Positions 6,974 through 43,740 of a DNA stretch of 64,000 bases are shown here, piece after piece. Below the pieces are notes generated by a model. The model saw only the letters and a list, made by a program, of their open reading frames with translations, was not told where the DNA came from and searched no databases. Position 1 is the stretch's first letter, and every line of letters begins with the position of its first letter. A program made the position numbers and the translations under genes. Source of the DNA: Perna viridis (Eukaryota); contig CM074511.1 in the NCBI GenBank assembly GCA_037379345.1, positions 4,092,001 to 4,156,000 of the forward strand, written 5' to 3'.

Positions 6974-8315
6974 GTAGATTATTGTATATCACTATTTACA
7001 TTTTTCATTTATAAAAAAAAAAAAAAAATTGAGTAAAATTTGATATGTATGATAAGAATGGAATGTGTGTACAAAATGCATAAAAATTATACCAGATCTA
7101 TTTCTATTTCAGATACAAATAAAAATCCTTAAAAAAGCTTGATATATTTCCCAGCACTTTATACATGTTAAGGTGATACTTCATACTATTACAATATATA
7201 CATTAACAACATTCCTTAAAACCGGAAGAAAAAAAACTGGGCTTTTACACAGAAAATCTCGCATTAAGTTGAGTAAGGCAAAATATAGGTATTGTCCTAG
7301 TTAACTATTTATACCATGTACCTTTCAGATATTATCTAATAATTTGATGAAAAAAAAAAGTATTGCATTTCAATAAGAGGTTAAAAGATTCACCTTCATC
7401 ATACAACTGAAGAAGTATACCATTGGATTCAACCGCCTCTTTTAAAATGTTAACTATCAAAATTAATATTATGCATTACAGACACAAGAGTATTAGAAAT
7501 AAGACTGCTGTAAAATTTCTCATAATAATTTGACAGGACAAATAACAACTCACTGAATAAACAAGACCCACATAGATAACATGTATGAGTATGGAGTATC
7601 TCAAAATGTATCACCAAATATAAAGGAGTATAGAAACTAATGGGAGTATTTAAGAATAAAACAATGACTAAAAAGAACTGGAATGAAATGCTTTAACCAA
7701 CACACAGCTCATGTATATACAAGCTTCCTAATACTACTTACAAAATGGCACTAAGGTATGATAACCTTATATCTTAACTATACATTAATAACATTTTAAA
7801 TATAAGTGAATTACATTTTATGGTGACAAAATAATGTCAGTATAGAATGCATTAAACACTAGTAAACACTTCTTTAAATGAATAAAAAAAAAATTCACAT
7901 GGAGCTGCAAAAAAAAATTATACCAGAATCTCAATTCGTAAATAATATAACTATTTCTATAAATTTGTCCAAAAATATATCATATAAACAAAGGAGTGTG
8001 TAGAAATATGAAACTGACAATATTAACAATGTAAATAAATTTTCTCAAATTTAGTAGTAGTATCCTTAAGGAAACCTAAAACATAAAAATCACACAGATT
8101 ATTTCTGATACACCATAAACATGTTAAATATTTATCAGATTTTCACAACTTTTAAATGCTTTCATTTCAACACAACTATAATGAACAATACCAAATACAA
8201 CCTGGAATGTTTGTTTAAAAATAAAAAATGTAAAAGTTTCAGATCTAACCATGACAATACTTGCACTTAAAAAATGAATTATACACAAATGTAAGTCCTA
8301 GATGTTAGTTAATGT

Positions 8316-8910
8316 TTATACGAAGCTGGATGTACCAGGAGTAGTTGAAGGTTTGGTCTCCACTCGAGGATCATCAATAGGATAGCCATCAGCATCAAAC
8401 TTGGCTGGTTCCTTCAAATCTACTTCTCCGTAACTTGGTGGGCGCTGGTCATAACTTGGGGTCCTATCATACTCCGGTCTTCTAGAATAGGGCTCATAAT
8501 CATTACGATCATCATCATCATATCGCTTCTTGTCATCGTAGTCACTGTGGCGTTTCTTGTCATCATAGTCATTGTAGCCTTTCTTGTCATCATATCTATC
8601 ATAATCATCATCATAACGCCTGTCATAATCATCGTCATCACGACGGCGATCATAATCATCATCTCTATCATCGTATTTTCTATCATAGTCATCATTATCA
8701 TAGCGACGATCATAATCATCGTAGCGGTCATCATATCCTCTCCTGTCATAATCATCCTTATCATCATAGCCATTGTAGCGGCCTTTCTCATCTCCATAGT
8801 AGTCATCATGGTAGTCTCTATCATCATCTCTATATTCTCTTTCACTGTAATTATAATTGTCGTATCCCCTGTTCAATGAATCTGAACTCTTATGGACAAT
8901 GTCCTGAGTA
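8316..8910 (-). CDS. Gene A last exon: D/Y/R-rich cytoplasmic tail ending SSFV
   Basis: Acceptor ttttacag; phase 2 matches the upstream exon; EPAKFDADG resembles L1-family xPxxFNEDG; TAA at 8316-8318. Confidence 0.85.
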
Positions 8911-11900
8911 CTGTAAAATAACACATAATGTATCTTAGCTTAGAGATGAGAAGTTAGTAAGCAACAGGACAGAGATCTGTGCTATAATGCTCTATGATGT
9001 GGAATAACACAGTCTGGCAATTGTACTGTTATTTCAAATTCAATTAGTAGAGAGAATATTATCTATAGAATGATTTCTATGGCATAGAAACAATCATTTC
9101 TATTTTCATTCAAATATTATGTAAAATGTCTTCCCTTAAATGATTTATTAGCAAGTATAACAATTACTTTTAAATACTTTTGATATCAATAACCTGCAAA
9201 AATTTGATATCATTCCTACCAAATTAGTTAAAAACATTATTGTGTAGATAAAATTTCAGTCAGGTTCCTGAAAATGAGACAACTAACATGTATTCAGATT
9301 CTAAAAACATTTCTTGTTAATTTTTTGAACCAATTAGTTTGTATTTTGTTTGGTATCTCAGGAACAGTTTTGAAATGCTAAATTATCACAAAATTGTTAA
9401 AAAATAAAAATTCCATGCAGTTCTCCACAAATCACCACAATGAACATTCAAGTGATGGCTTCTGCGTGCTAGATACATGTTTAAAGCCTAAGTCTCAACC
9501 AGGAAGTACATTAAATAACATTACAACTGCCACAGAGAATATGAAGCATTAGTAAGCAGTAAGCTACACACAGGTATATTGGATTCCTGTTAATCACATA
9601 GCCTATTTGTCAAAAAAAAAAAAAAAAAATACAATTAACAGAAACTATCATTTCAAGGGAAAATACCTGATATTTTCAATGCTCTTTTATCACATATATT
9701 ATATATATTAATTAGATTCCTGATTTAGTGTCTAGTCAAAAGAAAGAGAAAATATTTTTGTTAAATCCAAATTTTTTTAGAAAACTGAGGTATTTACTAA
9801 TGATGTATTGATGTTTTACTCTTTAAGGATTAATTTATAAATACTTTTTTTTTTTTTTAAATTATGCAATTATGAGAAATTTTCTAATTTTTTGTCTAAT
9901 GTTATGCAAATAAGCACTTTGTGCAAATAAGAGGAATTTTTTATATGGAAAAGACGGGAAATGTTTCTGTTCCTTGAGTTTCTATGCAATTAAACAGATA
10001 TGTTTTTAAGTGGAATCCGCTATAGTCCATTATATAAATGACACCAAACAATTATCAGCTATCATCAGTTTGATAACATTCATGTAGCTTTATCAGTACT
10101 TATCAATTTGTGGTTAGCTTTTAATCTGACTTCTCAACAGTTTGGCTCTTTGGGTATCATAATTCAGCAAAGGGAGACAACAACTAGCTGAGATCAATTC
10201 AGACAAAAAATTGTGCTTTTAGATACTGCCAAATACTTAACTTTATTTCTGTGGTTAGAGAAAGTGAATTTGTAAGTTGAGTTAAAGCTAATTTGTTTAA
10301 TATACAGCCAGTCTCAGATAAATATTCAAAATTATTAAGTTAAAAACTTGAATAGAAATTTAAAAAGAAAAGAAAGTTATCCTTATTAACCTAGCAATTA
10401 TGTCCACAATATACCACATTGAAAAGTTTAAACATTGCCTTGATGTTAAAATTGCTACTTCACAGTTAATTTATTTATTCTTGATAGTATTCAACATTAA
10501 TTTTGTAATTAAGTCTGATTTTCTATAACAGACCATAATTGGGAATATTTTAGCCCTAATTTTCATAAAGAGAAATAGAAAAATTTTGCCTGCAACAATC
10601 CTGAAACAAAATTAGTCTTATGTAAAATGCACAGTGAATTAAGTGTTCTATCCCCAAATTTAAGGTAAGAAATTCAAGCCGGGATCCACCCTCTCTGAAC
10701 ATCAAAATTAATGTGAATACACAAAACCTTTGGAAGCACTTATGACAAATGATAAATGAATTTCAGTCAAAATTATCTAAAATATTTGCATGAAAGTTGT
10801 GAAATACAAGATTAAGGGAGAATGGTAGCCACATTATAATTTAATTATTGCAAGTTTAATCTTGATGCTTGCACTTTTGCAAACTTGATAATACTGAAGT
10901 AAAGGTTACTAGTACAGGGCAATTAGTAATGAGTTTCCAGTCTGAGGGATGATAATTTTGTCCATTAATTGAATTAGCCTGTGCATTATTATATTGTGTT
11001 TATACGCATCTATTTGAAATAAGACCAAAAATATTTATAGATATGATAAGTGATAATTTTTTTTTATCATATTCACTAGAGTAAAGCTATTGTTCTCCAT
11101 CTTGTTTATATTTACATATCGTAGTTTATTTGATTTTTAATTACTACATATTTATATTTAAAGCCATAAATATGTTATAAAAAGTTTACTCCATAGCATT
11201 TTCCATATTGCCCTGGTTTCAGCCCTAAACTACATTTTAGATGTGATAAGGAAAGGTCAAGCTGAAACTGGGATGATATGAAAAATGCTGTAAAATAACC
11301 TCTAAATATAAATAACATACAATTTAAACATGATTAAAAATAAATATAAAATTTATCAAATTTTCGAAAACTGTTTCTAATTGACCTCAATTGATAAAAA
11401 AATTAGAGAAGTTTTTATTTGCATTTTGTTGTTTACATTTTAAAAGTGGCTACCCTTTTACTAGTTGTGTTCAGCCTATTATTCAATATAAGAACTTGTA
11501 CAGTATATATTCAGTAGATATAGAGTGTAAACACATCATGAAAGTGTAGAAAAAAGAAGAAAGCAAGTGCTGGTACCAGATGGATGAGATGAGGATGTGG
11601 TGGTATCATAAAACATTCCAGTCGGCTAGTATTCAATACAAACAAATATAGGTTCTATAATTGAACTTTAAATAAATCAAATATCTTTATGTACCATATG
11701 AAATATTGTAGCAATTAAACTCGGAATACACCCCCCCCCCCCCCACCCATCAAGTAGCTATTGTTAAACAGAACTTTCAATACTAAAATAAACAAATTTA
11801 TTGATTCTGGTGGATAGACAAAATTTTATAATAAAAACAAGAGAGATGAGATTTTGCCTGACTTGAAAATGTTTTATAATGAATTGAGTGACAAAGGGGG

Positions 11901-14900
11901 TACAGTACTCATACACTGTTCACATAACAAAACTGATGCAAACTAATTAAGTCCTTATGATATCATGCAACATTTAAAGTTGTAAATTTGTTTCTTTATA
12001 AAGCTGAAATTCTCCAAAGCCTTATTTCCATGAAAAACTTCAAATATTATAATCAACATTTTTAAACTACCAACCTCCTTACAATCCAGTTTCACAGACA
12101 AGTAAAAATGGTAAGAAAAAAAATGAAACAGATTTAAATAAATGACAATGAACTATCTACAAACTAAAGCCAAGCTCTGGCATTTATAAGATATGTGTAT
12201 CCAGTATTCAAGTACTACTGTTGCGATCCAAAAACAGGTCATGAAAAGTTAATTTAACAATGGAAGCCTTTCTTTTATGACTATGTTACATTTAATAATC
12301 AATACATGAAGTGTCTTATTTATTTGGTTCTTTTATTAGCAACCTTTTTTTCATGGTGGTTTTAAATTATTTCTGAATATCTGGTATTATCTTTAAATGA
12401 AATATGTTCCTTGGAAATTCTAACAAACATGTGATTTGTATCTGGACAAAGATTTCAGATAAAACTCATGACTATATTTATTCAGCACAGGATACACATA
12501 AAAAAGCATATTACTGCAGTCACATCATCAGTATCACTTTGAAAACCTGGATTTCACAGATGTCCCAAAGGTCATGTTTATATTCAGAAGAAATATGCCT
12601 CTATCTACCCATAGCCATTTTTATGAAAATATTTTTTTTTCTATCTATCAAACAGTTTTCAGTATCTTCAACTAGAAATTGAAAACATGATTTTTTTTTA
12701 TACAACAAAGTTATCTTGAAAAAAATATTTCAGAATATATGATTTGTTCTTGATATATACAAGCAAAATAACTTCACATGAATTTCATATGATATTCACC
12801 TGAATTGAGTAAATAAAATTTGTGCAGAGTTCATGTGAAATTAATGTGAATCCAGCTTCATCATGAATTTCATGTGAACTTTTTACAAGTTATTAAATGA
12901 ATTTTATGTGGAAATCATGTAAATTTCATGTGAATCTCACATGAATAACATTTGCCTGTGTACATAGAGACACTGAAAAAAAGCAATCAGATCACAAAAG
13001 CAGAGCATATTAGCAGATCTAAAGGCAGTTGATAACCTTATAGAATCTTGCCTAGTTGGAGAATATTTAACGTCCCTGAAAATACCAAACACATAGTTAT
13101 AGAAACTAAATCAAAAGAAATGGTTTCACTACAGGAACATTTTACCATTATCAGTCATTATTTCTCAATGTAAATATTTTGGAAGAAAGTTAAAAAAAAA
13201 ATTCTTTGCTTTCTATAAAGACAGGAGAAGATGAGATACAGTGAAACCATTTCTCTTTGTTCTATAAGATAATCAATCTATATTTCAAGGGTCATCTTTT
13301 AGTCATGCAGTTTGGAAGAAGCTTCAAACAAAACAAACATAACATGTATCAACTGAGTATTATTTGAAACAAGGATGTTCATGCCAATTACAAAATATAT
13401 GGGAAATAATGAGAGGAAACTCTGGAATTACTGTTTATATAACAGAAAATAAAAAACAATATTACAATAGAAAAATAAAAAAGTATCTTAAAAATATGTC
13501 AATAGTTCCAAAGATATGAACCTTTTCCAGGGACAAGCCTTATATATTACCCAGAACAATTATAGTTAGGATGCAATTTATTCTCATATGACATAAATAT
13601 TTATAAATTAAATTCAACCAATGAAATACAAACCTTCTATCATCTCCATATTCATCACGCCTTCTGGGTGGAGCTAAAATAAGATATGAATATTAAGAAA
13701 ACTTCACTAACCGATAAAAAAATAGACAATTAAAATAAAATAAAAATGGCTATACTAATAATGATAAATTCAGTCTTAAAGGCAATTTTCATCTTAGAAA
13801 CTAACAGATGGACATGATTATCATACAATGATCCCGGTAAAATTAAAATTATTGTCTTGAAAATTTCTTTAACTTTAAAACATCAAACATTTTCAAGACT
13901 TCTTTAAATAATTTACCTGTATATGGCTTATGCACTTTAGGTTCTGGTCGTCTTTTGTACATCAGGTAGATTAGAATACCTAATGCTATTATGATCAACA
14001 CAGAGATTATCAGCCCAATAAACCATCCAAAGTTAGCTCCCAAACCATAGGCAGCCGCTGTAACAGGAAAAAACATAAATATTAAAGTTACAAGGCAGCT
14101 GTATTAAAGGAAAAATACTGATAAAAGACACCAGTTGTAACTAACAACCTATGTCTCAAATTTTCTAAGGTACAAAGGTATAAATTAAAGTTGCAACATT
14201 ACAACCACAAACCTGTGTACTGATAGGTGAGTATTCCACAGAACAGAGGGCTCTTACCCCACTTGGCATTAATACATAGCATAATTATAAACATAGTCAT
14301 GAAGTACTGACAATACCATAACATAAGATATACTTACGCATTCCTTTTGTAGTAACCACTTCAGTACCACTAGTTGATGTACTATCCCCATTGGTTACAG
14401 ACAGACGGACTTCATATGATGTACCAGTCTGTAGATTAGACACACCAATCCAGCTCTTCGATACTTCTTGTGGTGTTTGTTGCCAATCTGACACACCTGC
14501 ACAAGTAAATCTAATTCATTATTCAGTTGCTTAATGACACTTTAACTCTTAAATCATAAGATAATACACCAGTATATATCCCAAGCATTCATGAAACTTA
14601 GTTTTTTCTCATTACAATCCATGGTCAATATGTGTCAACTGAATAATCAGAACAAAATACTCCTTAGTAAAACTAAGGAAAGGAAGAACAATGCCCCTCA
14701 TGGGACTGATACCCCCGCAGCCAGTTGAACTTTGTACATTTGAGGACCAAAGTGGACACATGATTCATATTTGACACAATTTAATGGGAGATAAACTTAG
14801 CATTTGCTGCAATTTCTAAAACACTCAATTTCAAACCACAATCAGTACTACTATTTGTTGTTGACAACACAATGACAGATTTTAACTGCAAATGTTACTT

Positions 14901-17900
14901 TAAACATTAATTCTTGACACATGGTAATTTACACCCCATTAAATTTCATAACAATCCTGCAAGTTGTGGACAACACATGTGACCAAGTTTTGATGAAAAA
15001 TGCCTAAGTCCAACAGCCGTCACTTTTACAATTTTTCCCCAAACATTAATTCCTGACAATTTGCACATACCAATATGGTAATCTAACATTCCTTTGAGTT
15101 TGATTACAATCCTACAAGTCATTAAGAAGGAATTGTTGACAATGCATAGACTAAGTTTTGCTGAAAAATGCATCAGTTCAAACAGCTGTCACTTCTACAA
15201 TTATTGCCCAAACATAAATTCCTGAAAATATGCACACCCCAATATGGTAATCTAACATTCCACTAAGTTTCATTACAATCCTGTAAGTCATTGAGAAGTT
15301 AAGGATTTTTTTTTGCTGAAACGCCCCAGTTCAAAAGCTGCCATTTCTATATTTTTTGGATTACATTTTTTTTTATTACAGCTAGAACCTTGGTTCCCTT
15401 GATTACTTTTTGTCCAAACATAAATTTCTGACAGTTTGCACATCTCCATATGTTATATTACATCCCACAAAGTATCACAACAAACCTGCAAGCTGCTTAG
15501 AAAATAGTTCAGACAGACAGACAGACAGGGTGAAACCTATACTAGTATACCCCAAACATCATTAATGGGGGGTATAAAGATAGTTCATCAAGTAGCTCAC
15601 CTTCTTTACGATATTCTACAAAAACAACAGTACCAAACCTCCTGTTGGCTATGGTTGTCCATGTCACATTAAAGAATGTTGAATTTACATGGATGATGTT
15701 AAATCCTGGGACACCTATATAAAACAAATAAAGAAATTATAAGCATTATATTTGTACTTTAGGTTCATTCATTTAAATGTACATTGGATTTGTTCTAATT
15801 CCAAGAAAAATTAAAAACTGAGGTGCAGGGTATGGTGTAGCTTCACTGTTTCAGAGGAAGAGCAACCATGTTACCCTTAACTATTGTTTAGACTGTCTGA
15901 ATACTGATTATAAAGATTTGACTTTTTCATCAAACTTTCTACAAGGAAATTTTCTTTCTTGATTTATTCCATTATGGTCCATTTAGTTTTCTGAAATATA
16001 TATTTTCCATATTGTTATTTAAACATACATGTACTTAAAATGACTTACTCATACTAGCTGTCTTAGCTGTGGTCAGCTCAATAAAGGATACTTCACCACG
16101 TCCATTCTCTGTTCTGCCCCACATATGTATTCTGTATTTCTGATTGGCTGTCAGACCATTGAGTACAGTTGTGTTTAAACGAGAGTCTACAATCTGTGGA
16201 TCTCTCTCCTGCATTTTACCAAGATCTAAACCATCAACTACCAAGGGAAAAAAAACAAATTTATCATTATAGATTTCATGCATATCAAGAAAAGAATATC
16301 CAACCAATCAAAAAGGCAATGCTTTGTACTAATCTAATGCACTTAGCTTGATTTTTTACTGTGCTAGCTCACAGAAGCAATGGCCTGCAGATAATTTTGT
16401 CACTGTCACAAGCTAGTACTGATTGGATATTAGGACCAAAATATATTCACGAGTGCCAAAGAACGCCTAGATTTAACAAGGAATGCAGATCTTGTTCCAG
16501 GCATGATTGATTACATTTTGATTATTCAAGATAAACAATTGATTATCCTATTATTATATAAATTTTATCAATAATTCATTGCTATCTTCAACACAAATTT
16601 TTAATTATTGATATTCGTATTGTGACGTTTTGGCAGGAGAAAGTCCGAGAGTGAAATTACCAAATTTATTTCAGTGTAAATTTTTTGCATAGGGAACGTC
16701 TGATAAATCACTGCTATCTATACAATCAATGTCTTTCTAACTCCAAGTCAACCAGTTCTTTAAGTTAGGTGCTTAGCAAAAGCAATGAGTACTTAACACC
16801 TTTATAGGTACTACATTTATAAGTTTCCCTATATTAATAAATCAATTGTAAATGTATATTAGCTAACAGTACAATATAAATGCAGACTGTATTCCTCTTC
16901 AAACCACAAATACATCAAGTTCTCTGTTATTACCTGTTTGGTATCCTACATCATAACCCTGTAGATATGTATTAGATGCTGCATCAGGCGAGTTTAAAAG
17001 TTCAGGTTTTGACCAGGCTAACTCTACAAAGTTACTTCCAACAACTATAGCTCGTAGTCTTTCTACTGGGCCAGGCACTGAAATCAAACATTTTATCAAT
17101 TCTGTATTACCAAAACATAATGTATCAGAAACAATCTAACCAATGTTCCCAGCTTACTATTGTAGGTTTTTGTGTAATGGACTAAAGTTAAGTTTCCATT
17201 TTCTACAGCAAAAGTTGAGCATTCAAATAATTGTTTTTTCAGTAAAAGCATGGCCACTATACAAATACAAAATTCATATAAAAACCAAAATATAAAACTA
17301 GTACTATTTTTTATTGTACTGTAATGTTAAAAGACAATACCATGAATAAAACAAATGAAATAACATAATTACCTCCCCTTGCAGTGACAAATCCCTGGAT
17401 AGGACTTGGTCCACTGACATAGTGTGTAGTCATCACACAGATTTGGGCCTCCATGTAGGTAAAGGGCAACAGGTCTGTCAACGTATATTTAAACTCTGTT
17501 ATTGAACGTCTCTTTCTTGTCAGAGATCCATAACGAGGTGTGAGGTCTTTCTCAAGGAGCTCATCCTCCCTAAAGGTTTCTCTTTTCTTGCCCTTCACCC
17601 AGTATTGCAACTGAAATGAAAATGCAAAAGCAAATTAAAATAACATTTAACAGATACAATAAATAATACCCATACCTGATACTTACATGTAGTTGCCTTT
17701 CAACTGTCCATTAATTTATTTTTTTCTTAGCTCATATTAAACTCTTTAAATTGTTAATTTATTTTTAGCTCATCTTGACCCTATGAATTGTTTAGTTTAT
17801 ACATGTATTTAGCTCACCATCAACCTTAAGCTAAGTTATTACTATAAACCATGAAGTTTTCCTTACTTATACGGTAAGACCAGTAATACAAAAATTAAAC

Positions 17901-20900
17901 TGTCGTGAGGAACGTAATAATTCAATCCGAGGAATGGTGGCAAAATAAAAACTGTGTGAAAACAGATTGATTGCATAAACCACTGAAAATAGACAAGGTG
18001 AAAATTTCCCAGTACACAGTACCTCAATAATACTCTTAATTGTCCATAAAGAGCATTCCATAGTAATCTCACCTTAAACCCTCTAAATCTTCCATTAAGA
18101 CCAGATCCTGGTCTATCATTGAGGTCCATATCCCAGTTCCAATAGAAAGTAGCAGCATTGTCCTCCATAGCACTTTCATCCACTACGAAAGTCTCCACTC
18201 TAACATTAGCATCCGGTTCTATTAATAGTAGTTTAAATATGTAAGATACACAATGAAAATAAAGAGAAATCTATAAATCATTACACCTTACCACATTTAT
18301 GGTACTGGGTCCATTCACACTAGGAGTCTGCTCGCTACTACATTGAAAATGGTTATATAATTTCAAAGGCAGATCATATGCTGCATAAAGAATGACTGGT
18401 GCCAGCAGGGAGTAATACATTAAGTACCTGGTGCCAGTGAATTATTTTATATTAATTTTTAAACATTAAAATGTGTGTTTTGCTATTAAGTTGAAAAACC
18501 AAGTTGACAAACAAATCAGGATTTTTTTTAAATCATAATTTTTACATTACATGAATTTACACTTTCACAATGAACTGGCCTATTGGAGATATTCTGGGGC
18601 AGGTAATCAATGTTAATTCAATTACTGTGAGTGTGATTATTGTAAAAGTATAAATTTTCACGGAGTACTAATATTTAGTGGTGGACAGATAAGCGCTAAA
18701 AATAGGACCCGCAAAATTGATTTTTGTCAAGGAAGTCTATTTATAGACTGAACTTGACTTAGAGATTGTCAGCAACCAAATTACGTAACCAATGTAGACA
18801 TTTTGACATATAACTACCAAAATAACACTCCTCGGGTTATTCTCCTTGCAAAGTTTGCATTAAGATATTGCTCCACCGCCGATCATACTCCATGTCAAAT
18901 ATGTGATGTTTACTTTATGTACGACATGGGCGTGTAACGATATTGAGGCTATTTAATATGTGTAGAACTGCAAGATTTCAGTGATTATATGATATTAACT
19001 ATTTTGACTCAGAGAGCTGGACTATTCTGTCAAATTGACCCGAATATTCGCAGGGAGGAAAGCTCACACAAGATTTGCCAATTAATTTCTCTCGATCTGA
19101 CCCTTTTAATGAAGATGTCGGGAGCTTCTAATGACGGATTTTCGGAGCTGCAATGTAACCTTATTGTGTAGTAAGTATAGATTAAAGTGGCGAATTCAGG
19201 GGAGGGTGAATGGGGTTGGCACCCATCCTTTTATTAAAAAATTTCACGTGTGATTAATTTGATCCCAGGAATTTTGTACATAAAATGCAAGCACTGCGTA
19301 CATATATGTTAATTACTACAAGTACATGTACATAAATAATATAAAATGGTAAACTCACAAGTACATACATGTAGCTAACAAAGAAGTATTTAAAATAGAA
19401 AATAAACAGAATTGTTAAATTATTATGATTTCAAAGGACAGACATAAACAATATCTCTGTTTCAACAGTAAGGATGAAAGGAGGTCATGTGGCATATTCA
19501 TCACATTCAGTAGGTAATCTTGAACTATCAAAAAGGAGGGGTATCCAGTGAAATAAAGTAATGTCCTTGGGATGTGAGTGGACACATGAGCCATGACATT
19601 ACACATACACTTGTACATGTATATGTTCCTAAAATCCAAACTTCCACACCGACCATAGACCTATATCGCATACCCTTTATCACACCCCTAGACCTGTATC
19701 ACATACCATATATCGCACTCCTAGACATATCACATACCGTATATCACACTCCTAGACATATCTCATACTGAATATCACACCCCTAGACCTATATTGCATT
19801 TTATATCACACCCCTTGACCTATATTGCATTCTATATCATACCCCCTTGACCTATATTGGATTCTATATCACATCCCTAGACCTTTATTGCCTTCTGTAT
19901 ACCACACCCCTAGACCAATATTGCATACCGTATATAACACCCCTAAACCCATTTCAAGTACCCTATATATCACACCCACAGACATATATTGCATACCTTA
20001 TATCAGAGGCCTAGACCTATAGGACCTATATCACATTCTCTAAATCACACCCATAGACCTATATGTCATACCCTATTTCACACCCCTAAACCCATTTTAA
20101 GTACCCTTTATTAACCAACTACCCAAAATATATTAAAGAGTAATCAAGGGAACCAAGGTTATAGCGGTAATCAAAAGAATGCAATCCAGGGGCAAAGACC
20201 AGACATGGAAAACAAACATACACAACAAAGAACATAAAGTAACTAAAATCATACATAAAAAGTAACAAAAGCAAATGAGCAACTCGGACTCCACTAAAAA
20301 CTGGGAGCATGGACCAGGTGCACCGGTAGGGTAAGCGTCAAAAATTGACCAATTGACATGAATTCAAACTGGCCATCTATACGGGGCCAATATCGATGAA
20401 ACCAGGACCAATACGGCATCATAACTTCGGTCGTTTGACACCACTAATATGAAATAACATATTTATTAACATATAATATATCACACCAACAGACATATAT
20501 TGCATACCTTATATCACATGCCTAGACCTATATCACATACTGAATATCACACCCATGGACCTATATCACATTCTCTAAATCACTGTGCATTGAATATGTG
20601 TTGGATATCAAGGCTACCAAAAGTAGACATTTTCTAAGAGCTGATTTTCATGGACATTCTTACATGTACAATGTACTAGGTAAGTGTTGAAGGTATACAT
20701 TATTTATTCATATACTTTGTATGTACTCAGGTATTTAAAATTTTCAAAACTGGTGATAAATATACTGTTTTTATAGCACTACAGAGGAGAAGTGTTTTGA
20801 ATAATTGTTAACGACGAAGACAATGACAGACGCCAAGTGATGGCAATAGCTCACATGGCCTTTGGCCAAGTAAGCTAAAAATAAGTTAAAACTTACTGCT

Positions 20901-23900
20901 TTCTCCTGAATGAATTGTAACAGTGCGTAACTCTGCTGCACTGTCTCCATACTGATTTGATGCTTTGATAGTCACATTATATGCTACATAGATATCATTG
21001 GTCAAGTACTCATATCTCTTCAGTCGCCAATCTGACAAGGTGCGGGTGAAATCTACTGGGGCATTTCCACTACGCATAATTGATAACACATAATGGAAGT
21101 TGTCTCCCCCTTGTTCAATTGGTGGCATTGGCTGGAAAATAATATTTAACAAGTCAGTAAACATACAGATACCACTCGTATATCACTGTGTTAAAGTTAA
21201 GGTTAAATGATTATTCTCTTTCAAAAATAATTATTTTTTTTTATTACTGATCTCATAAATCAATGAAAATTAAACATTAGCAATGAAAACATTCAACTTT
21301 AATACAAGATTAAAATACATACTGTCCATTCAATAACAAGGAAGTTTGGTTTGTCCCCAAGTCCTCGTACATTTTCAGGGTTTTTAACTGGCTTGGCCTT
21401 ATCTGTTATACAAACACCACTATGTTTAGAGGGTTCACTGATCCCTATCTTATTGGTAGCCAATAAACGCCAGCTGTAATGAACTCCAGGCCATAGATTA
21501 AGTGTAATAGTATTCTGTGACTGGTTGGCTGTAGCAGCGAACACCCAGTTATCAGGTTCAACCGAGGTATTAAACTGAATAGTAAAGTACTGAATGGGTG
21601 CATTATTAAATGCTCCTTTTGTCCATGTTAATGTGACCTGTCTGTTAGCACAGTTCTTCTTCTCTATATTTACTGGTGGATCTGGCTTATCTGCCAAAAT
21701 AAATATAATGTACAATGTTAATGACATCATCAGCCCTTGTTAAATCAGTCATTAAACAGTCATACTAAGGTACTAGTAATAACTTTTGTAAACACAAATC
21801 TAGAGATTTTGAAACACTGGATCAAGCTCATTTTGTTCAAAATTTGCAACCCCAGAACCCTGCTCCCACTGGATTCGCAACAACAACCAGTACCATTATT
21901 TTGCTAAAATATATTTCAAGAAATATAAGGAAGTTCTACAATTTCTGATTAAGCTTGTTTCTGAAAAACAGGGTCTCATCAGTAATTCTATCTTCTTACC
22001 TTTAACTGTTAGAATAGCGGAAGCTGTTTCATTATCCAGACCATTAGTAACAACACATGTATATAACCCGGAGTCTCGACTGATCGTTCCACTAATAGTC
22101 AACGAATTGTCCTGAACATTTGTGGTCATTCTCTGATCATTTGTAGTGATTTCTTTACCATCTTTCAACCACAACACTCTTAGATTTGCAACTTCCTCAA
22201 AATCTGTAGTACCAGAGCACGTAAATTTAGCATCAGTTCCTGCTGTGTTCTCAAGATCAGAGGGACGCTGTTCTATCCTAGTTTTTCCTGTAATCAAAAT
22301 TATTCAAGTTTTTATACAAAACAAAAATTTGATAAAAGCTCCTTAATAAAGATTTGTACGATCAGGTATATTTCATACAATACTAATAAGGCCATAAAAA
22401 AAATATAGGTTCTCAGGCCACTTTTATAAATATGGAGGAGGGAGGTGTTTTTTTTTGTTTTTTGTTTTTTATTAGACTTGTTTGCAGTGAATGAGAAATA
22501 AAATATGATACAAATATGAAACATGTCTGCCACAAACAATTTGGCACAAAATAAGTGCCATTTTCTCGGGGTCTAAAATCACTCAATGTAATTTCCTGGC
22601 AGAGTAGGTGTAAATTACCATTATATCAAACACTGGCATGATTATGAATAGGAGTGGGTAATAGAGGAACGGATCTAGATTGGACACAACCAATTTCCAA
22701 ACTCTTACAGAATGGATACGAAAACATTCTGTATTTTGAACTTCATACAAATTGTTGACGCGAGTGCTTGAGAACCTAGGATATTTTTAATTGCCTAACT
22801 CAGCTATACTTCAGTGACATAAAATGAAAGTTTACTCAATACCATCATCAATCGATTTCTTTATCTGAGTATTTACCACTTACTTCTGACAATGAGAACA
22901 CCCCAGTCCTTATCAGATCCTTCCTGATTTTCTGCCAGGCAAGTGAAGTTTCCCGCATCTGATAGTACAATTTTCTGTAATTAAAATTGAATATAGTGAA
23001 ACTCTTTGTTGTAGGTTCAAGACTGTAAACTTCCTTACTTTTGAAGTTTACTTATTTTTGCTCTTTTCAAGGTGGAAAGAAAAGCACAAAAAATATTTCT
23101 GGTGAAGTTGATTTGTATGTAACACAACTCACTATTTATAACGGCAAAAATTGATACCAACGAATATGTTCACAGAATCCACGAAAATTGATACCAACAA
23201 ATATGTTCACAGAATCATTGATACCAACGAATATGTTCAAAGAATCCACGAAAATTAGCAACCGCAAAATATAATATGTTTACAGTATCTAAACCTTTAA
23301 CCACATCAACTTTAATGAAATTAATATTGAAAAAAAAATTACAAAAGAAGAGTATAAGAATTTCTTCATTAAACTTCACAAAACAATTACAATGATAGTA
23401 ATAAGTTTTTTAATAAATCACACAACAATTTAAGGCAGAAGTTGACCTACAGTTATATGTAAATCTCCATTTGGCATGATCTGGTACCTTCCTCCAGTGA
23501 TTTGTTGTGTTCCTTTGAACCAGGTTATAATTGGATCTGGTTTCCCACTGGTCTGACAAGTCAGGAATACATCAGTTGTTTCTGCTACTTTTAGTTCTTT
23601 CACTGGTCTCTTTATAAACTGAGGTTTCTCTTCTACAAAACCATAATGATAGATAGAAATAATTATTATCCATTCTTTCTTTATTCTATCTTTATATAAT
23701 GTTTTCTTAGATCAGTTCTTTCAAAGCATGCAAATAATTTTTGGTACATAACTTATGAAAATCTACTAATATAAATACCAAATATGATACCGTGTAGCAG
23801 ACAATTTTTGTGGGTTGCTAATTTTGGCATTTTTTAACAGACTGTCTAAAAATGCTAAAATAAGTTTCACAAAATATTTAATCTGGGTGTAAGTAATAAG

Positions 23901-26900
23901 TGCACCATTTATCATCTGCAAAATTTTTCACATACATTTTTGCTTCAAATGGCAAAATTTTAAAACCTCAAAACAAAACCACCATATATTTAGATATAGG
24001 TTCATATCATACTCCCCTTAAAAACTTTGCAATTCCTATACTTAACATAAAAACATTTACTAGAGATATTAATCATACATTTTTTTTAAAATATAACATC
24101 CCCAGACAGTGAGAAATACTTACTTATAAGAGAGTAGTTAAATAGAAGTCTCCCCATTATAGTTACTAGTCACTTACCACAGATTCTTAAAAGATATGAA
24201 TATCAAAGTCTACCCAAACATAGCCGTAAATATTTGCAGCTCAATAATACATATTACTTACTTAGAACATTAAGATAAAACTCCCCCAAAATGTAACTAT
24301 AGATATTTACGGCTCAATAATACATATCACTTAAAACACTTGAACTAGCATAAGGGATTCATGCTGAAATGAACTTAACAGAAAACTTAACTGTGAACTT
24401 TAACATTGAATTTTCTAAGTCACCTGATCATGACTATAGGGGTACATGCGTAAAATTGGCATTAATTTGTGATACAATGATGATAATGCATCTGTACACC
24501 AAATATAATTAACCCAGCATAATGGGTTTATGTTTAAATGAACTTATCAGGAAAGCAAAACCTAAGTCTCAGCTCCGGCAACTTTTGTCGCAGGCAAGAC
24601 AAAAATCTCCCCAAACCCTTCTCGAAGTTATTTGCGGCTCAATAATAACATATTACTTACTTAGAACATTGAGATAAAAATCTCCCCAAACATAACCATA
24701 GATATTAGAGGCATTGCATTGTAGAACCATAACATCACTTTTCTGTAGATTAGTTATTGTAACATTGTTATCATTTGGCTTCTGGAACCTTGCTGTCTTA
24801 ACTGTTGGATGAGTAGAATCTGTTCAAATATAATACAAGTCAATTAGAGAAATATATATATACCATATTCTTCCATGTATTACATGCATCTGTGTATTCC
24901 TTGCATCCCCTTCTTGGCAAGGGAGATCGGCGGAAAAAGTTAGTTTCCGTGTAAAACGCACACTGGGAAGCAAGGAAAAATCACCAACAGAAGACCACAT
25001 TGAGATGAAAGGATTCCGATAAATTCTCTGAAATGTGTATCTTTTCACCATTAATCTTTTAAATAAATGTATTTTCTATGTTTCCCTGTGTTTGCAAGCC
25101 ATTTATTGTTTAAAATAGTTTATAAATAGCGATGTAATGGATCTGAGTCGGTTGAAATGTTTACATTTCCTGTTCAAATACAAATCATTCACTAAAACAA
25201 TGGCGTCAAGTCCGACCGCTTATAAAAAGATGTTTTAATTTGCCAAGTTGTGTATTGATATCTGACATCTGGAAACAGTTCATCAAAGGATTAGTAATAA
25301 TTGTTTCACCTTTTAAATTGATCTTTTGTTATTTGATAATTAAATGACAATGGGCCCGAGGAGAGGTTGGCACTCCCGGTATTGTGTATTAAACGCTCCA
25401 CTGCACACAGGTAAAGAAGTTATAATCAGACGACTTGATTTGAGAGAGCAATAAGAAGCTAGTCTTGGGTTTTCGTACAAACTGTGAAATGCAAGGAAAC
25501 GCCATTGTTGGATAAAACAACTATTAAATAGCAGTAAAACTTTATTTGTTTATTTCACATAAAACTGTTCTCAAAAATACAATGGCTCGATGTTGTCTTT
25601 AGTTGACGACTTTGGTTCTGATTCCTGAAAATTACAGACCTGAAAATCATCTCTAGAAAAAAAATCTAGAAACTCATTGTTTTGGTGTATACCACGCATC
25701 TCTCTTCTGGAGCAAAGAATAAGTTGAAAAAAGTGTGCAGTATAAATGGAAGAATACGGTAATACCAAGGTACTGAATCACAATTTTTTTTTTAGTAATT
25801 GTTACTAAAACCTTTGACCTAAAATATGTCAAAGTTTTATCAAGAATTTTCATTATTTGTTCTGAACAAGTATATGGAAAGCATTAAATATGAAAGGACT
25901 TATATTTAGACTGACTTGGATAAAAAAAATCACTTACAAGCAATGTCATACCATTTTCCTTCATATGATTTAGCTCATGAAAAATATAGTTAATTTTACA
26001 AAAAAAATTGATGTGAAAGAAATTTATAACCTCAGACATCATAAAATCTTATTACCAAATATAAAATGATGAACATTTCAGTCAGGGGTAGATCAAGAAA
26101 TAAGAATGGGAGGTTGTGCTGACTGATTAAAGAGGACCATAATGCAACAGTGATTCTCTATCATTTTGACTATTTTCCCAAGAAAAGAAGGAAGATGCAT
26201 GAACATGGATCAGCCTTTGTGTTTCTTATATCATCTTTACCTTCAAGTGGCACACCATTTATAAACCACTTCAGTTCAGGTTTAGGATCACCAGTAGCAT
26301 TGCAGAAAAATGTAGCCGACTCTCCAACCCCCTTTTCGATATCTTGAGGTTCACCATCCTCAGTCCAATATGGTTTAGCTAAAAAAATCAGTTAGGAATG
26401 ATTTTTGTTCTTAAATTACCTTAAATTGAGAAATTTTTTACACATTTTCAGGATATTCAAACAAGTACAAAATTTTAAACTAAAAAATCAAAGTTTATCA
26501 AGAATTCCATAATGACATTCTGAAAAGCATTTAATACAGTAGACAGTTTTTGTATTTCATGTCATATTTACCAAGCTATTAATAGATTGATTTTAGAGAC
26601 CATTTACTAATGGTCTGTCCATTCAGATATTAGCACATTATTCCTATTACATTGAATTTTGTTACATTGTACTATCTTCAAAATCTATATTCAAGTATTT
26701 TAATTAAAAATCTGTCGTAATTGACAAAATTCAAGTCAACAAACAATTATGTAAGTTAGGATCAATTTATTATACAGGTTGAAATAAGAGCTAATAGAAT
26801 GACAGTATACTGACTTACATTTGACAAGGATTTTAATTTCAGTCTGTAAACGATTCCCTGATGGACTGATTGCATAACAAGTGTAACTTCCCTTGTCTTC

Positions 26901-29900
26901 TATGGTCAGCTGTGAAATTAATAGTTCTTGTCCTCCCAGAGATAGTATACGTCGATTATCTGGAATACGGCCTGGTGTTGTACTCTCCCAATGTATTTCA
27001 GGAGTAGGACTATAATTTAACAGAATATATGCATAAAATGACTGTCTGATTACACAAGAAAGTCCAGAAGAAAGGTCTTTATTAAGAAAGTTGACTGACT
27101 TGCTGAAAACTTAAACAGTAAGAATACTAAAGCATTATCTATACATTGTAAATCTTAAACCTACAGAAAAATATAACACAAATAAAGCTAATGCATAAAA
27201 TACTTTTAACACTAAATGAACTTTTTGATATCTCAACTCTCCCTTAGTAGAATTAGTAGAAACACTAAATAAAAAATTTAAACAAGTTGATTATAAAGAT
27301 ACAAACTTACTTTCCACCATAAATACATTTGATTCTTATAGTTTCTCCAAGTAATCCAAATACTTCATTGGGTGATGTCCATAAGTAATGAGGATCACGA
27401 TTGGAATCAGTTCCTGTCAAAATAATTTAAGTAAGGATTGTAACTACTGCTATGTACATGGTTCTCACTAGGATTCTTACATGGTGAGTCCTGGGACTCA
27501 TCACTTTTTGGAAAGGTGAATCCCAGATTAACTTGGTGGATCCCACCCTTTTCCCTGGTTTAAAATCAGTTCAAGTGCTACATTGATCATTTTAGTGTGT
27601 ATAGTACTACATATGTACATGTATTTATAATTTCCCATGTTTCCTGTGTACAATCATTGGCTGTCTTCATAACTCTGTATATAGTGTATGTTTAGTTACA
27701 AAACTACTGTAACATGTATAATACCAACAGTCTTAGGAATTTTGGAAAAAAGTTTATTTCTGGAAAATGTGGGAAAAAATAATTTGACTTATCACTGAAG
27801 AAAAAAAAGTTTGTTTTAAAAAATTACTGAAAAAAAATAATTGTTGCCTAATTTAAAATTTGTTTTTGAAATTACTAGATATTATTATATAGACAGCAGT
27901 GTTTTATCGAATGGTTGCAGCTTTATTCCATATTGATTTTGAGACAAGTGTAGAAGCCACATAAAACCATGACTAGTTCCTGTGCATTATTCACAGTTAA
28001 ATGTTTAAAAAAAAAACAAACAACAGATGTTCAACCTGCCTGAATTAAATGAAGATCCAAACTCACAAATGTCAAGTAAAATTGCAACATTTATTTGAAA
28101 AACATGTCTTGCACCTGCTACTTCACATATTATTATTTTTTTTTTATCTTTAAACCCGTCTTTATATTATAAAATATCAAACTAAGAATGATTCTTTAAT
28201 TAGCAATTAGGGAGTGTGCATGAAATCTGCCTGTAACAAAAGTAAAATGATATACAAGTCACAAAATATCCAGTTCTGAACAGATTTCATGGTGAAATGT
28301 ATCTAGTTCTATCTAAAAGAATTTGTTTTACTCATTTTGAAATTATTAGACACAATTTTATATCAAATACTTCATTACTTAATTTTTTTGTAAAAAAATC
28401 GTATGATGAACATCATGTGTAAATAACTCTGTAAACTTCCGTTTCATGTCCGCTTGTCAAATGTTGAGCAAAGTTTTTCCATGATTTTTGGGAAAGTTTT
28501 AATAATTTTTAAAAAATTTGGATGTTAGATCACAGTTGATATTAAGAAGATTCATCCAGCAGATGCACAGAGTTTTAACTTGACACATCCTGCAAGTTTT
28601 TCATGTGTCAAAAACGCATGTACACGCTTTATTAAGAACCCTGTATCTATAGATGTTATAAACTTACTCATTTATAAAGGGATAACAGTTTATCATGCCC
28701 ATGATTGAAAACACTCACACAATCAGATGAACACTCAACATCACAAACAATAATAGTCATATTTCATTAATAGATACAATTTAGAATCAAGCCTTACAAT
28801 TCTAAAATCATATCTATCAAGTATGTTGTTATATTTTAATTGCTGGTCAATGAAAAGTATATCTGTATTTATCTAAATGATAATGCTATAAAAATATGAT
28901 ATCTTTAATATGGAATACATACCTGAGCTGCCATAAGGAGTGATTATGTAACCTTTGTCATAGGTGTTCTTTCTCATGAAATAGTTGGTAGCCATACAAA
29001 CATAAAATTTCCCATCCTCTCTATCAGAGGCTGTTACATGGGTAAAATATAAATTACCTGAAAAACAGATATATAAACCATACATACACAGGTTTTTCTC
29101 TGGGAACCGATCACATTTGCAAAAGCATATTATGAAGGGGCTTTCCCCCCCCAGAAAACTTGATTTTACTGAAAGTCTTAATCAACAAAAATACAACAAT
29201 AATGCATATTATCATGATGAAAAGAATTTATATTTTCTCTGACCTGGAAAGGATCTGAAATCCTCATTTAAATTTGGATATTGATTTGTTTTGTTAAGGT
29301 CAGAACGATATGCCATACAAATACTTGGATTTTGCAAAATCAAAGATTATCTGGTTGAAATCTACATAGTCTGATTCTAGATTCATTTTCCTTCATACTA
29401 ATGCCATACTTTTATTTGCAATTTTGTTTTATGTTGAAGTTTTTTTTATAATTTTACATGATAATGCCTTTTTTTACAATTTAAAAGTGATACTGTACCA
29501 TTATATGATAGATTTTTATTTCTGGATGTATAAAATAAAATGTGTAATGTACAGGTAAGAAAATGTTGAGCTGATTTTACTTTAAATAGTGTTGATCAGA
29601 TCAGTGCAAAAGTAATGATAAAACAAAGAGACCAACAAGATGGTTAAGTATAGAAAATGAATTAGATGTCAGCAAGTCTATAGGTAAGGACATACAAATG
29701 ATGTCACAATCTCCATAACGCACAATAAACTCATGATAGACACTTTACATTAACCAGCAACAAACAAGAATATTGAATTTTTGTTGCTTCCTACATTGAT
29801 GATACATTTTTTAACAAACCTTCCAAGTCCATTGTTATTCTTTTGTCAAAGTTAATTGCTTCTATACGCCCTGAGCTGGGATCCTTCAATACCCATTTTA

Positions 29901-32900
29901 TTTCAGCTTTTGGAATACTAGTAGGAGGTATACATTCCAGTTTTAGAGAATTCCCTCGTTCAACAGACACTGGTTTTGGATCCCCAAACTGAAAATCTTC
30001 TAGCATGGCCTCCCTCAAGTTAATATTAATTGATGTTGAAATTCCATGATCATTGTATGCATTACATTGAAATATTCCTTCATCTTTATCCTCTGGTCGA
30101 TTCATTACAATTGTTCCTTCATTAGGAAGCATTACCATTCTGTCACCATTACCACTTGGATCAAAAGCATCTTCATTTCTTGTCCATGTATATCTATAAA
30201 ATAATATCAAAAGCATCTTCATTTCTTGTCCATGTATATCTATAAAATATGATCAAAAGCATCTTCATTTCTTGTCCAATTCTTTGTTTAATAGCATAAG
30301 TCATTGTACAAGGCTCTTTTTTTCATCAGTCAGTAAATAAAGGTTTTTCCTTTACTTTTATTAAACTGTCGATAACAACTCAACCAAGTTCGATGTCATG
30401 TTATTTAGATGCTATCATGTATTAAGGAGAAATCAAGGAATCCAAGATTCTAGCGAAAATTAAAATTAAATTAACATTTAAAAATGTTGAATACAAATAT
30501 AAAAAAAGGAAGGATACAACAAGAAATATTTGAGCAATAATACATAAAAATAATAATTTTAATATATAAAATATATGCCCTTGCTGAGAAAACTGTGACA
30601 AAAAATATTGTTAGGAACACACAGACAAGGGTAAAACAGCATACCACCTCCTTCAGAGTAGGGGTATAAAAACTTAATTTCTAAATCCCAATCCCATTAA
30701 TGGGTGAAGAAATAAAATTATAATTACGTAGGGGCAGGAACTCCATCGGCTTTACACTGAATCTGTACGGTTTCTCCTACTTTGTAATAAACATCAAATG
30801 GAGGCTGTAAATATATTGCAGGTGGTCTGTTCGGAACTGAAATTATAAACAAAAACAATCTTGCAAATTTCAAAGTTATCAAGGGTGTCTACATTAAGGT
30901 GAATTTAGAAGAAATTGTCAAGGAAGACATTGTATTATATATATAAAGTGTTAGAAGTCAAAGGTTCATAATTAAAACGGACAGCCAATTGAAACAATCT
31001 AAACATAGTGTTAAATCGAGGATTAAAAGAGGGCATGGTAATTTTTTTCCCGAAGGGCACTTTTTGTTGCAATGTTTGATTTTTAGGGCACATTGATTTG
31101 TGTAAAAATTGTTATACGATTTAAAAAAATCACAGACCCTTCTGAATTAGAACCTTTTTATTTGAACTAAAACTTAATTAGAGAAAGTCACATACTTTCC
31201 AACTTTTAAAAATCCCCATGGAAAATGTGACAGCACGATGCTGTATAGTTTTCTTGGCACAGATAGAAGGAAACTTGGGCAATTTTTATTTTTCATTCAA
31301 TGCATACCATGAGGTGCAGTATATTAGAAAATGTAAAAAATATTCGAAAATGTTGATACTGAATTTCCAAAATCATCACTATTTGAAAGGAATAGTATTT
31401 CTATTAACTATTACATACAAAACTTTTGGGGGAAATACTGCATTGTTGAAATTACTGGAAATATAAAGACTGCAGGGGAGGTAACTCAATGATAATTTAA
31501 AAATTTGTTTACACACATGGTTCTACAAATTTAAGACCTTTTAAAATGACTGCATTGTCAAATTAATTGTGGAGTGTAATTTAATATTTAGAAAATTATT
31601 GGATGTTCATAAAATAGTGGTAGATCCAATCTGGATTTGTTTTCTAATTGTCAAACCCGGATCAGATGATTGCTCCTCGGAAATTATACATGTCAAAAAT
31701 TGACCCTTACCCTTTAGACAGCAATTAACACCTTTTGTCAGATTAATGACTCTTTTAATTATAGAAATGAGAATGAAAGCGAATAAGGGGTTCGATTTCG
31801 GAGTTTTAAGGTAATTTTGACAAAATCCGGTTTTGTGTAAAATTTGACCTAAAAATCGTATACGGTAAACAACAAAAATGGCAGTGAAGTTTTGTGATTT
31901 CAAGAGGGCTAAAATTCTAACAGGTGCACATTTTCGTGACTGAAAAGGGCATTTGGCCTGTTGGAAAAGGGGCATGGCATTCAGAAAAAAGAGCATGGTG
32001 TTGCGCCATGATACTTTGCTTTAGATTTAACTCTATAACACTTTATCTGTAGCAAGGCACCATCACACAAAATACTGTAGCATACCAAGGTACCATCACA
32101 CAAAAAACTGTAGCATACCAAGGTACCATCACACAAAAAACTGTAGCATACCAAGGTACCATCACACAAAAAACTCAAATACAAAATAGTTAAAACATGA
32201 CACGACTCATTGTGATATTGATACGAAACTGTATGGATTTTTCCCCACAAGACATGTCCTACTTTTCTATTTGCATAGTAATTCATCAATAATTTGAAAA
32301 AAAGTTAAATTTTGACCTGTACCAAGGACCAGTAGTAAAGTAGGACATGTCTTGTGAGGAAAAATCCATTAATCTTTGTTAAGATCAAAGTTATAGACTC
32401 TAAGAATGAATTCTGACTTCAACAAAATTCCTCACTTTTAAATCTGTTGATACATTTTCATTCCAAATTGAAGAAAATATATAGGACAACATGCTGTTGT
32501 GTATCACACATATTTTGTTCAATAATGAATTGTGCCTTAGATCATACAATATTTTTACAAGGAGCAGACAGACATGAAATAGTCAGGAAAAAAATGCCAT
32601 AAAAGATTGAGGCAACCTGTTTTCTTTGGATATAATCACAAAAATGGGAATCAGCCTGTCTCCCCTTTTGTGCAGAGCAAGATATTAAGACCTGATTGAT
32701 AAGAGAATATTAAGGTCCTCTCCAAAATCTAGTATCATTGAGTAATTTAAAATAATTCTTTAACTGCGTCTAAACAACAATTCATTTAAAATGCATCTTT
32801 CAAATGAAATACTCATTAGACACCCCAAGACAACTCATTTGATATCATATGTTACATAAACAAACTTACCTGAAATAACACACAAAAGGAGTGCTGATAT

Positions 32901-37275: not shown

Positions 37276-38334
37276 AAAAGAGTTTTCATTTATACAGTGT
37301 TACAGTTACAGAGCCCAGTCCACGAACGTACCACACAACGGGGTGTCTTAATAAGGTTATTTTAGTCTGAATATAAGTAGTTGATATGGACACGTAAAAT
37401 CTAGAAAAGCGAATGCATTAGTGAATGTTCGAACATTTTCCTTCATTTATTAAAAGAATAGCACACCACTTATATGGTTAGATTGGTATTGCTGTTTTCT
37501 TAGTCAGATTTCAAAGTGATAACTGGCCATTTTCACTGAGAAACTTGCACATACAGAAGACTCCCGTTACAAAATCATGGATTCACCCCTGTATTTAAAT
37601 GCCTAATTATATCATTTACTTGTTAGTACGTTTCAATGAACAAAATACCGGGAAAGTTGGCCGAAGACCTTTACTTTCTTTGGTGGGAGGAGTACAATAT
37701 AAATATATTCAGATTATTGAGATTTTTTTGCTTGTGGTTCGAAGTTAAATGGATATTTGTGTGGGAAAGATCAGTTGAATGCATATTCGGAGAGTTATTA
37801 TATTTCCACCACTTTTACATAACTTCCAGACCCCCCCCCATCGAGAAGAAAATGGTGTGTGCCTAAGGGAACAGGATTCACACAGAAAGCAGATGTATGT
37901 ACATAGACCTGTAATTAAAATTAATACAAGTCTCTGATATGCACTATAGTACTTAATGGTACATTAATGTATGTAGCCGACTTCAGATATTCACAACAAG
38001 AAGTTTTTTGTAAGAAAATGTTTGCAAAAGAAAAATTAAATAAAAAAATCCAAAAAGATTGGTGTGTGACACCATAAACCTGTAATTTAATTATAGGTCT
38101 CTTGTGTCACTTTTATATGCATCCAATGTTTATTATGGAAGGTGGAAGTAGAAAATAATAGCAGTAATAAGGTCTATACTGCTACCGCACTCTCCAAAAG
38201 AGGAGATAGTGGAAACCCACAAATTTGCTCAATCCTCCTTTGGTCTACTAAAGACAACGAAGTTGTGATCTTTTATCTTCATAGCATGATCTGTAAAATT
38301 TCCTACCAAGCCTCTTTCTAAACTATTAACTTCT

Positions 38335-43535: not shown

Positions 43536-43740
43536 CTACACAAATGTATGCATGGCTGACGGAGCAGCAACTTCAGAAGCTGTCATTTTTTCTGCACCGT
43601 ACTGTCCTATAAATGATCCATCCTCATTAAATCGACTAGGATCAGGATCTGCATACTCTTCTAAGCTATCTTTGTCACTCTCTAGGGGACCATATCTATC
43701 AAAGTCATCTGGACTACCAGCTAAAGGTTGTGTCTCACCA
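43536..43740 (-). CDS. Nrg: Gene B last exon with FIGQY ankyrin-binding motif, ending HTFV
   Basis: GETQPLAG...DKDSLEEYADPDPSRFNEDGSFIGQYG...HTFV*; FIGQY at 43599-43613. Confidence 0.96.

Follow-up and report, generated by a model that had tools for sequence, protein, structure and literature searches.

Gene A, one of two neighbouring L1/neuroglian-type genes in the 64,000-nucleotide stretch of Perna viridis DNA analysed here (the window), probably encodes an expressed, noncanonical receptor in which the FIGQY segment has been remodelled and a disordered, tyrosine-rich linker leads to a PDZ-type tether. L1-family receptors are textbook adhesion molecules that the FIGQY–ankyrin link ties to the spectrin skeleton. 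RNA splice joints, Pfam matches and relatives in other genomes bear out the original prediction of an L1-type paralogue with a Tyr/Asp/Arg-rich tail beside a canonical FIGQY gene (gene B). This descriptive part of our reading is well supported; the mechanism of the gene A tail is speculative.

Structure, transcription and splicing of gene A

The ectodomain exons of gene A (positions 14338–30888 of the window, minus strand) were recognized from open reading frames, PDB matches and exon-level Pfam matches, with Ig/I-set followed by fn3 in the order expected for the L1 type. In PDB searches, the Ig1-2 exon matched contactin-2 (3e-19), neurofascin (1e-16) and also hemolin, and the FN3-1 exon matched Drosophila neuroglian (1CFB, 1e-22) as well as contactins. 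The transmembrane (TM) exon could be read directly, and the predicted architecture of six Ig domains, five FN3 domains and a TM segment agrees with these results, the domain count being put together from half-domains in exons scanned one by one. A polybasic furin-like site is present in the third FN3 domain of both gene A (RKRRS, 17386–17535, minus strand) and gene B (RRRRRQ, 62600–62700, minus strand), which is where vertebrate L1-family proteins undergo cleavage.

The TM exon (13917–14057, minus strand) ends with YKRRPEPKVHKPYT in phase 1 and is followed by a 40-nt cytoplasmic mini-exon (13634–13673, minus strand; APPRRRDEYGDDR) that ends in phase 2, and the reading frame of the last coding exon (8316–8910, minus strand) fits both phases. 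That last exon has an acceptor AG at 8912–8911 with a polypyrimidine tract before it and a TAA stop at 8318–8316. It codes for one split codon plus 197 codons, among them 59 Asp, 31 Tyr, 26 Arg and 13 Lys; sequence, open reading frame and RNA-seq thus agree that the exon is real and carries the 31 tyrosines claimed for it. RNA evidence came from two stranded RNA-seq runs and two transcriptome-like contig sets over 8160–14150. Depth was 22–50 in the last exon versus about 1 in the intron, and all reads had the orientation of minus-strand RNA. The predicted 13634-to-8910 junction was recovered in 15 reads and two contigs, and the joint between TM exon and mini-exon (13917 to 13673) in 73 reads; upstream, RNA-seq shows a loose end from the TM exon to 14338, where it is spliced to the end of the FN3-5 exon. 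Exon phases and RNA joints together give a total cytoplasmic tail of about 225 amino acids (aa), the length first proposed.

Three parts can be distinguished in the last exon, all on the minus strand. The first is a 66-nt (22-aa) alternative block, TQDIVHKSSDSLNRGYDNYNYS (8845–8910), delimited by joints from 8844 to 13634 and from 8844 to 13037 or 13052 and by near-invariance at the DNA level. The second, in the centre (8487–8843), is a low-complexity D/Y/R stretch that has 24 Tyr in about 119 aa and is defined by TRF, by composition and patterning and by AF2 pLDDT values below 50; TRF finds in-frame tandem repeats of 27 nt and 60 nt inside it. The third is a conserved C-terminal module (8319–8486), recognized from alignments, from hhalign comparison with the last exon of gene B and from a rise in pLDDT at FDADGYPIDD. 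This module reads SRRPxYDRTPSYDxRPPSY..VDLxEPxKFDADGYPID..TPGxSSFV and includes a PPSY motif and a class-I PDZ-type C-terminus.

The membrane-proximal part of the tail is alternatively spliced. An in-frame acceptor at 8844 drops the 66 nt (22 aa) of TQDIVHKSSDSLNRGYDNYNYS, and a 39-nt cassette micro-exon (13037–13075, minus strand), identified from RNA joints, sequence and the mapping of a loose end at 13633, adds DVKYSPTRQDSI; a short form of 24 nt (13052–13075) uses a GC donor at 13052. The cassette joints were seen in 36 reads (13633 to 13074), 17 reads (13037 to 8844), 5 reads (13052 to 8844) and 3 reads (13052 to 8910), and every combination of the cassette with the 8910 and 8844 acceptors keeps the frame. 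The two choices are coupled (Fisher p=1e-4): the cassette was joined to the 8844 acceptor in 22 of 25 reads, and cassette-less transcripts to the 8910 acceptor in 15 of 22. Inclusion of the cassette was unequal between the two RNA-seq runs (p=0.002). More than half of the junction reads contain the cassette, and no counterpart of it was found in gene C, a paralogue described below, or in the intron of the Mytilus gene Me2.

The ankyrin-binding segment in genes A and B

Gene B is one of the canonical L1 cell adhesion molecules (L1CAM, neurofascin, NrCAM, CHL1, Drosophila neuroglian and Caenorhabditis elegans SAX-7/LAD-1). Its tail reads KRNRGDKYH, then VQEKEK and, in the last exon (43536–43740, minus strand), ...RFNEDGSFIGQY...HTFV before the stop, an exon assigned by its acceptor phase and by a Pfam match to Bravo_FIGEY (PF13882, 2.2e-12). 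This exon gave the sole PF13882 match found in the 723-Mb assembly, a count that is a lower bound. By contrast, gene A, gene C and the Mytilus homologues gave no Bravo_FIGEY match in Pfam with the threshold relaxed to E≤10, and neither the gene A tail nor its 56-aa core had any Pfam match up to the same threshold. The loss of FIGQY from gene A, as originally proposed, is therefore upheld by the scores of the two genes. We also looked for a FIGQY-bearing alternative last exon: tblastn with the gene B tail as query found no second FIGQY-like exon in the window, and neither the reads leaving the mini-exon nor the genome-wide PF13882 search revealed one. A 160-aa open frame with a CPVC motif between genes A and B (36883–37362, plus strand) resembles the C-terminal portion of a retrotransposon ORF, and the long open frames at 48041–48410 (minus strand, gene B intron) and 19562–20111 (plus strand, gene A intron) are tandem-repeat-generated and not coding exons of these genes.

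Where the canonical FIGQY segment sits, the gene A tail has a conserved short motif, KFDADGYPID. The proposed homology between the two ends (EPAKFDADGYPI in gene A and DPSRFNEDGSFI in gene B) was recovered in the same register by hhalign, which sets EEVDLxEPxKFDADGYPID onto EEYADPDPSRFNEDGSFIG, but the similarity is weak (tblastn E=46; hhalign P=0.003, probability 10%). The exon structure is common to both genes: each has a TM exon with a phase-1 end after K(P)Y[TH] and a last exon opening in phase 2. The juxtamembrane segment, described earlier as lost, is not deleted; it has degenerated, with KRR and the exon phase retained. The C-termini are likewise of class-I PDZ type, with SSFV, SSLV or STFV in the subfamily of gene A (pattern S-x-[FL]-V) and HTFV in gene B. 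A PDZ-type C-terminus is already known for Nrg180 (PMC3627646).

In neurofascin, F1202, E1204 and Y1212 are essential for ankyrin-G binding (PMC9396398). In the five tails of the gene A subfamily, the equivalent of F1202 was kept, E1204 was replaced by Ala, Ser or Asp and Y1212 by Asp, Thr or Pro. As only the Phe of the three essential residues is retained, the canonical ankyrin determinants are lost. Judged from these residues, the gene A receptor may be ankyrin-independent; it could also still bind ankyrin by means of this Phe and the conserved motif.

Gene A resembles canonical L1 proteins in its Ig and FN3 ectodomain, its single TM segment, the dibasic site in the third FN3 domain, the tail intron phases in common with gene B, a PDZ-type end as in Nrg180 and the alternative splicing of its short cytoplasmic exons. 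It differs from them in lacking Bravo_FIGEY, in having YPID[DTP] in place of FIGQY without equivalents of E1204 and Y1212, in the replacement of the KYxVxEKE juxtamembrane segment and in the doubling of tail length by a disordered D/Y/R insert (about 120 aa). The loss of FIGQY is not new in kind, because Caenorhabditis elegans LAD-2 is a noncanonical L1CAM without an ankyrin motif, with a 40-aa tail that holds no known motifs (PMC2213605). Like LAD-2, gene A combines an L1-type ectodomain with a tail free of the ankyrin motif and has a canonical paralogue alongside; unlike the 40 aa of LAD-2, its tail of about 225 aa has conserved motifs, traces of its family origin and a repeat-rich insert. 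Orthology of gene A and LAD-2 is unlikely. Given the LAD-2 precedent and a tail that keeps its exon phases and PDZ-type C-terminus, the original description of an undescribed system was overstated. We found no description in the literature of the conserved D/Y/R insert, the replacement motif or the conserved splice unit, and these three features appear to be undescribed.

Relatives and selection on the tail

A six-frame search of the genome found one further copy of the tail, on contig C12, with 56–57% identity over 197 aa. It belongs to gene C, a complete, collinear paralogue within about 25 kb whose Ig, FN3, TM, mini-exon and last exons are 50–78% identical to those of gene A. Gene C spans G000:C12:16617633–16641800 (loci L003, L006 and L004), on a different chromosome-scale contig from gene A. 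A dispersed repeat with an open frame of about 70 aa in an intron of gene A (20122–20363, minus strand) recurs in at least seven places in C12:16600000–16669999, with 64–91% protein identity; as it recurs in and around gene C, it is probably a fragment of a transposable element.

A profile built from the gene A and gene C tails, run against 1.84 billion representative proteins, returned only three clusters, two from Mytilus edulis and one from an ENA contig. The two M. edulis proteins are Me1 (CAG2213613/14), which is closest to gene A, and Me2 (CAG2213612), an adjoining model of which M. galloprovincialis VDI02191 is the counterpart. In M. edulis the two genes form a tandem pair on a single contig (L012), unlike genes A and C. 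The mini-exon of gene A is also kept in gene C and in Mytilus, and in the Mytilus loci the last exon is laid out as in gene A, with the 22-aa alternative block present. In the third cluster, from a source that we call species X (ENA contig ERZ25074796 ctg32546, L011:10172–10369), the last exon is just 66 aa long: it has the YDRTPSY...KFDADGYPID...STFV module and a short D/Y-rich seed, without the long D/Y/R insert. The presence of the module without the insert suggests that the long insert was a later expansion, and the species X exon may, from its sequence, represent an intermediate state; about 16 kb upstream on the same contig held no TM, Ig or FN3 exon.

Further searches returned no additional relatives. 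A word-index protein search with the last exon produced 3396 candidates, none at E≤0.01 (full-length proteins fell outside its length filter); a scan of JGI metagenomes with the core motif gave no relatives, and the ESM Atlas held no usable match for the Mytilus homologue. PDB profile matches of the tail core to archaeal RNA polymerase, at E of about 1, were set aside as due to chance. On sequence evidence, the subfamily comprises gene A, gene C, at least two Mytilus genes and the shorter species X relative, and within the protein data searched it seems confined to mussel-like bivalves. Gene C and the Mytilus homologues keep the Tyr/Asp/Arg-rich composition and lack FIGQY, a point that the original prediction proposed to check in orthologues.

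In the comparison of gene A with gene C, synonymous sites are saturated (ectodomain pS 0.79, tail pS 0.8–0.9), and pN is alike in the two parts (0.23 in the tail versus 0.24 in the ectodomain). Between gene A and Me1, dN/dS of the whole last exon comes to about 0.13 (dN 0.18, dS 1.43), and that of the central low-complexity region is also about 0.13 (dN 0.24, dS 1.8), dN in such sequence being alignment-dependent; for the C-terminal block it is about 0.04 (dN 0.12, dS about 3). The codons of the gene A last exon are mixed (44 GAT and 15 GAC, 21 TAT and 10 TAC, and five different Arg codons), and four runs contained no SNP or indel in this exon, whereas the intron has several variants. Taken together, the dN/dS of about 0.13, the mixed codons and the variant-free exon reject a neutral expansion of GAT repeats, the outcome against which the original prediction had proposed dN/dS as a check. 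Within the central region, residue order is conserved between gene A and Me1 (z=8.9 against composition-preserving shuffles), but between genes A and C it is barely above the compositional expectation (z=2.6). The length of this region stays within 94–129 aa, and the counts of Asp, Tyr and Arg persist among the long tails. Local repeat units differ by lineage, with the 27- and 60-nt units found in gene A. These observations indicate a stable composition, with an order that is reworked by local in-frame repeats.

The alternative block behaves differently. The 66-nt block, both acceptors and an intronic GAGCTAAGA element are near-invariant at the DNA level in gene A, gene C, Me1 and Me2, and pS of the block is only 0.13–0.30 in every pair. 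Such near-invariance of the block and its acceptors, set against saturated synonymous sites elsewhere, marks a conserved alternative-splicing unit, which possibly contains a branch point or regulatory element. The near-invariant stretch covers 8845–8990 (minus strand) of the window, L003:8162–8317 in gene C, and L012:1667–1822 and 14209–14364 in Mytilus, with GAGCTAAGA about 25 nt upstream.

Physical character and possible roles of the tail

AF2 modelling with a five-sequence alignment gave the gene A tail a mean pLDDT of 45 and no secondary structure, with a local peak at FDADGYPIDD (72), the pattern that a short linear motif within a disordered chain should show; intrinsic disorder is accordingly predicted for the tail. 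In its charges the tail is a strong polyampholyte (FCR 0.54, rising to 0.69 in the centre; NCPR −0.14; kappa 0.09), and the four long tails share this character (FCR 0.5–0.7, NCPR −0.1 to −0.2, kappa 0.09–0.12). The alternating blocks of Asp and Arg/Lys described originally are not present: at a kappa of about 0.09, the charges are finely intermixed. Aromatic residues are evenly spaced in the central region of all four tails (mean gap 5–6, maximum gap no more than 10), and 0–1 of 500 shuffles were as even; this regularity is partly a by-product of the repeat origin. At least two Asp or Glu lie within three residues of 23 of the 31 tyrosines of gene A, and acidic neighbours of Tyr favour tyrosine kinases.

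We read gene A and its relatives as follows. In-frame tandem duplication inserted about 95–130 D/Y/R residues into the tail, and the FIGQY segment was remodelled into the conserved motif KFDADGYPID. Purifying selection holds the composition, length and Tyr spacing of the insert as its exact order drifts, and two coupled, in-frame splicing events swap short modules at the membrane-proximal end. The canonical ankyrin link would no longer be used by the gene A receptor, which would instead be tethered by its C-terminal motifs, through a PDZ scaffold, through GYPID and, in gene A and Me1, through a WW partner of PPSY. The acidic, Tyr-rich linker would then serve as a long, flexible, multi-site substrate of tyrosine kinases and not as a classical SH2-docking array, and phosphorylation would tune its charge and interactions. 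A more far-reaching proposal, that the evenly spaced-Tyr Asp/Arg polyampholyte is a new cytoskeleton- or scaffold-coupling module, a phospho-tunable 'brush' or condensate former that replaced ankyrin anchoring and whose output modes are selected by splicing, strikes us as unlikely.

Several other readings of the tail have to be weighed. The roughly 30 tyrosines might be docking sites or stickers, making the tail a multivalent phosphotyrosine/SH2 platform or a Tyr–Arg membrane condensate. Nephrin and LAT, with which the tail was originally compared, likewise have many tyrosines in a disordered cytoplasmic region, and nephrin is also an Ig-superfamily adhesion protein. The number of tyrosines (18–31 per tail), their mostly acidic context, their sticker-like spacing and the abundance of Arg fit such a role, as do two or three YxN sites per tail, one of them conserved within the alternatively spliced block. 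However, most SH2 domains need a hydrophobic residue or Pro at +3 (YxN being the Grb2-type site), and only 0–1 of the 18–31 tyrosines in each tail has one. The tails of nephrin and LAT rely on a few tyrosines placed in SH2 motifs (YDxV, YxN, YLxV); YDxV does not occur in the gene A subfamily tails, and the roughly 30 tyrosines of gene A stand in YD[DR][RKD] contexts. Tyr is followed by two or more charged residues at 22–23 sites in gene A, gene C and Me1 and at 11 of 18 in Me2. With almost no Tyr in a canonical SH2-docking context, the analogy to the SH2 arrays of nephrin and LAT is weak, and this part of the original prediction loses support. According to polyampholyte theory, a high, well-mixed, net-negative charge produces an expanded, self-repelling chain; the charge pattern of these tails thus speaks against ready homotypic condensation, and phosphorylation would make the chain still more negative. 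An SH2 platform or condensate is, in our judgement, a doubtful account of the tail. So, at about the same level, is the idea that the tail still couples to ankyrin, with KFDADGYPID as a derived ligand of the ankyrin groove and the D/Y/R insert as a mere spacer. Ankyrin grooves accept diverse disordered peptides, the motif is in hhalign register with RFNEDGSFIGQY and keeps the F1202 equivalent and D-G, and it is the most conserved part of the tail with the highest pLDDT; yet the equivalents of E1204 and Y1212 are replaced in all five tails and Pfam finds no match.

Two further readings would deny the tail a role or question the gene itself. If the tail were decaying or functionless, a neutral GAT/TAT expansion of microsatellite type would account for the in-frame repeats, for repeat units peculiar to each lineage and for the poor conservation of central order between old paralogues. 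It is very improbable and largely refuted: four genes have preserved an open frame and the composition although pS is saturated, dN/dS is low, synonymous codons are mixed, and the exon is free of variants, expressed and correctly spliced. A gene-model artefact, meaning that the last exon is part of a different transcript or that another last exon carries FIGQY, found no supporting evidence. Reads leaving the mini-exon go only to the cassette or to the acceptors at 8910 and 8844, the one loose end is the cassette itself, and gene B holds the only FIGQY-like exon detected in the window by tblastn and the only Bravo_FIGEY match found in the genome; the RNA joints and the absence of another FIGQY exon rule this reading out for practical purposes. 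We therefore retain the noncanonical receptor with a remodelled FIGQY segment, a Tyr-rich linker and a PDZ-type tether as the preferred reading.

Gene A is a duplicated member of the L1 family that dropped the family's FIGQY signature, kept the PDZ-type end and fixed a long repeat-derived disordered insert, with selection acting on its composition and Tyr spacing. The system is small, consisting of the two tails of neighbouring genes and a set of defined splice isoforms. The gene A/B pair offers a test case for how the disordered tails of adhesion receptors evolve, and the gene A tail one for evenly spaced tyrosines in a context that is highly charged and not prion-like.
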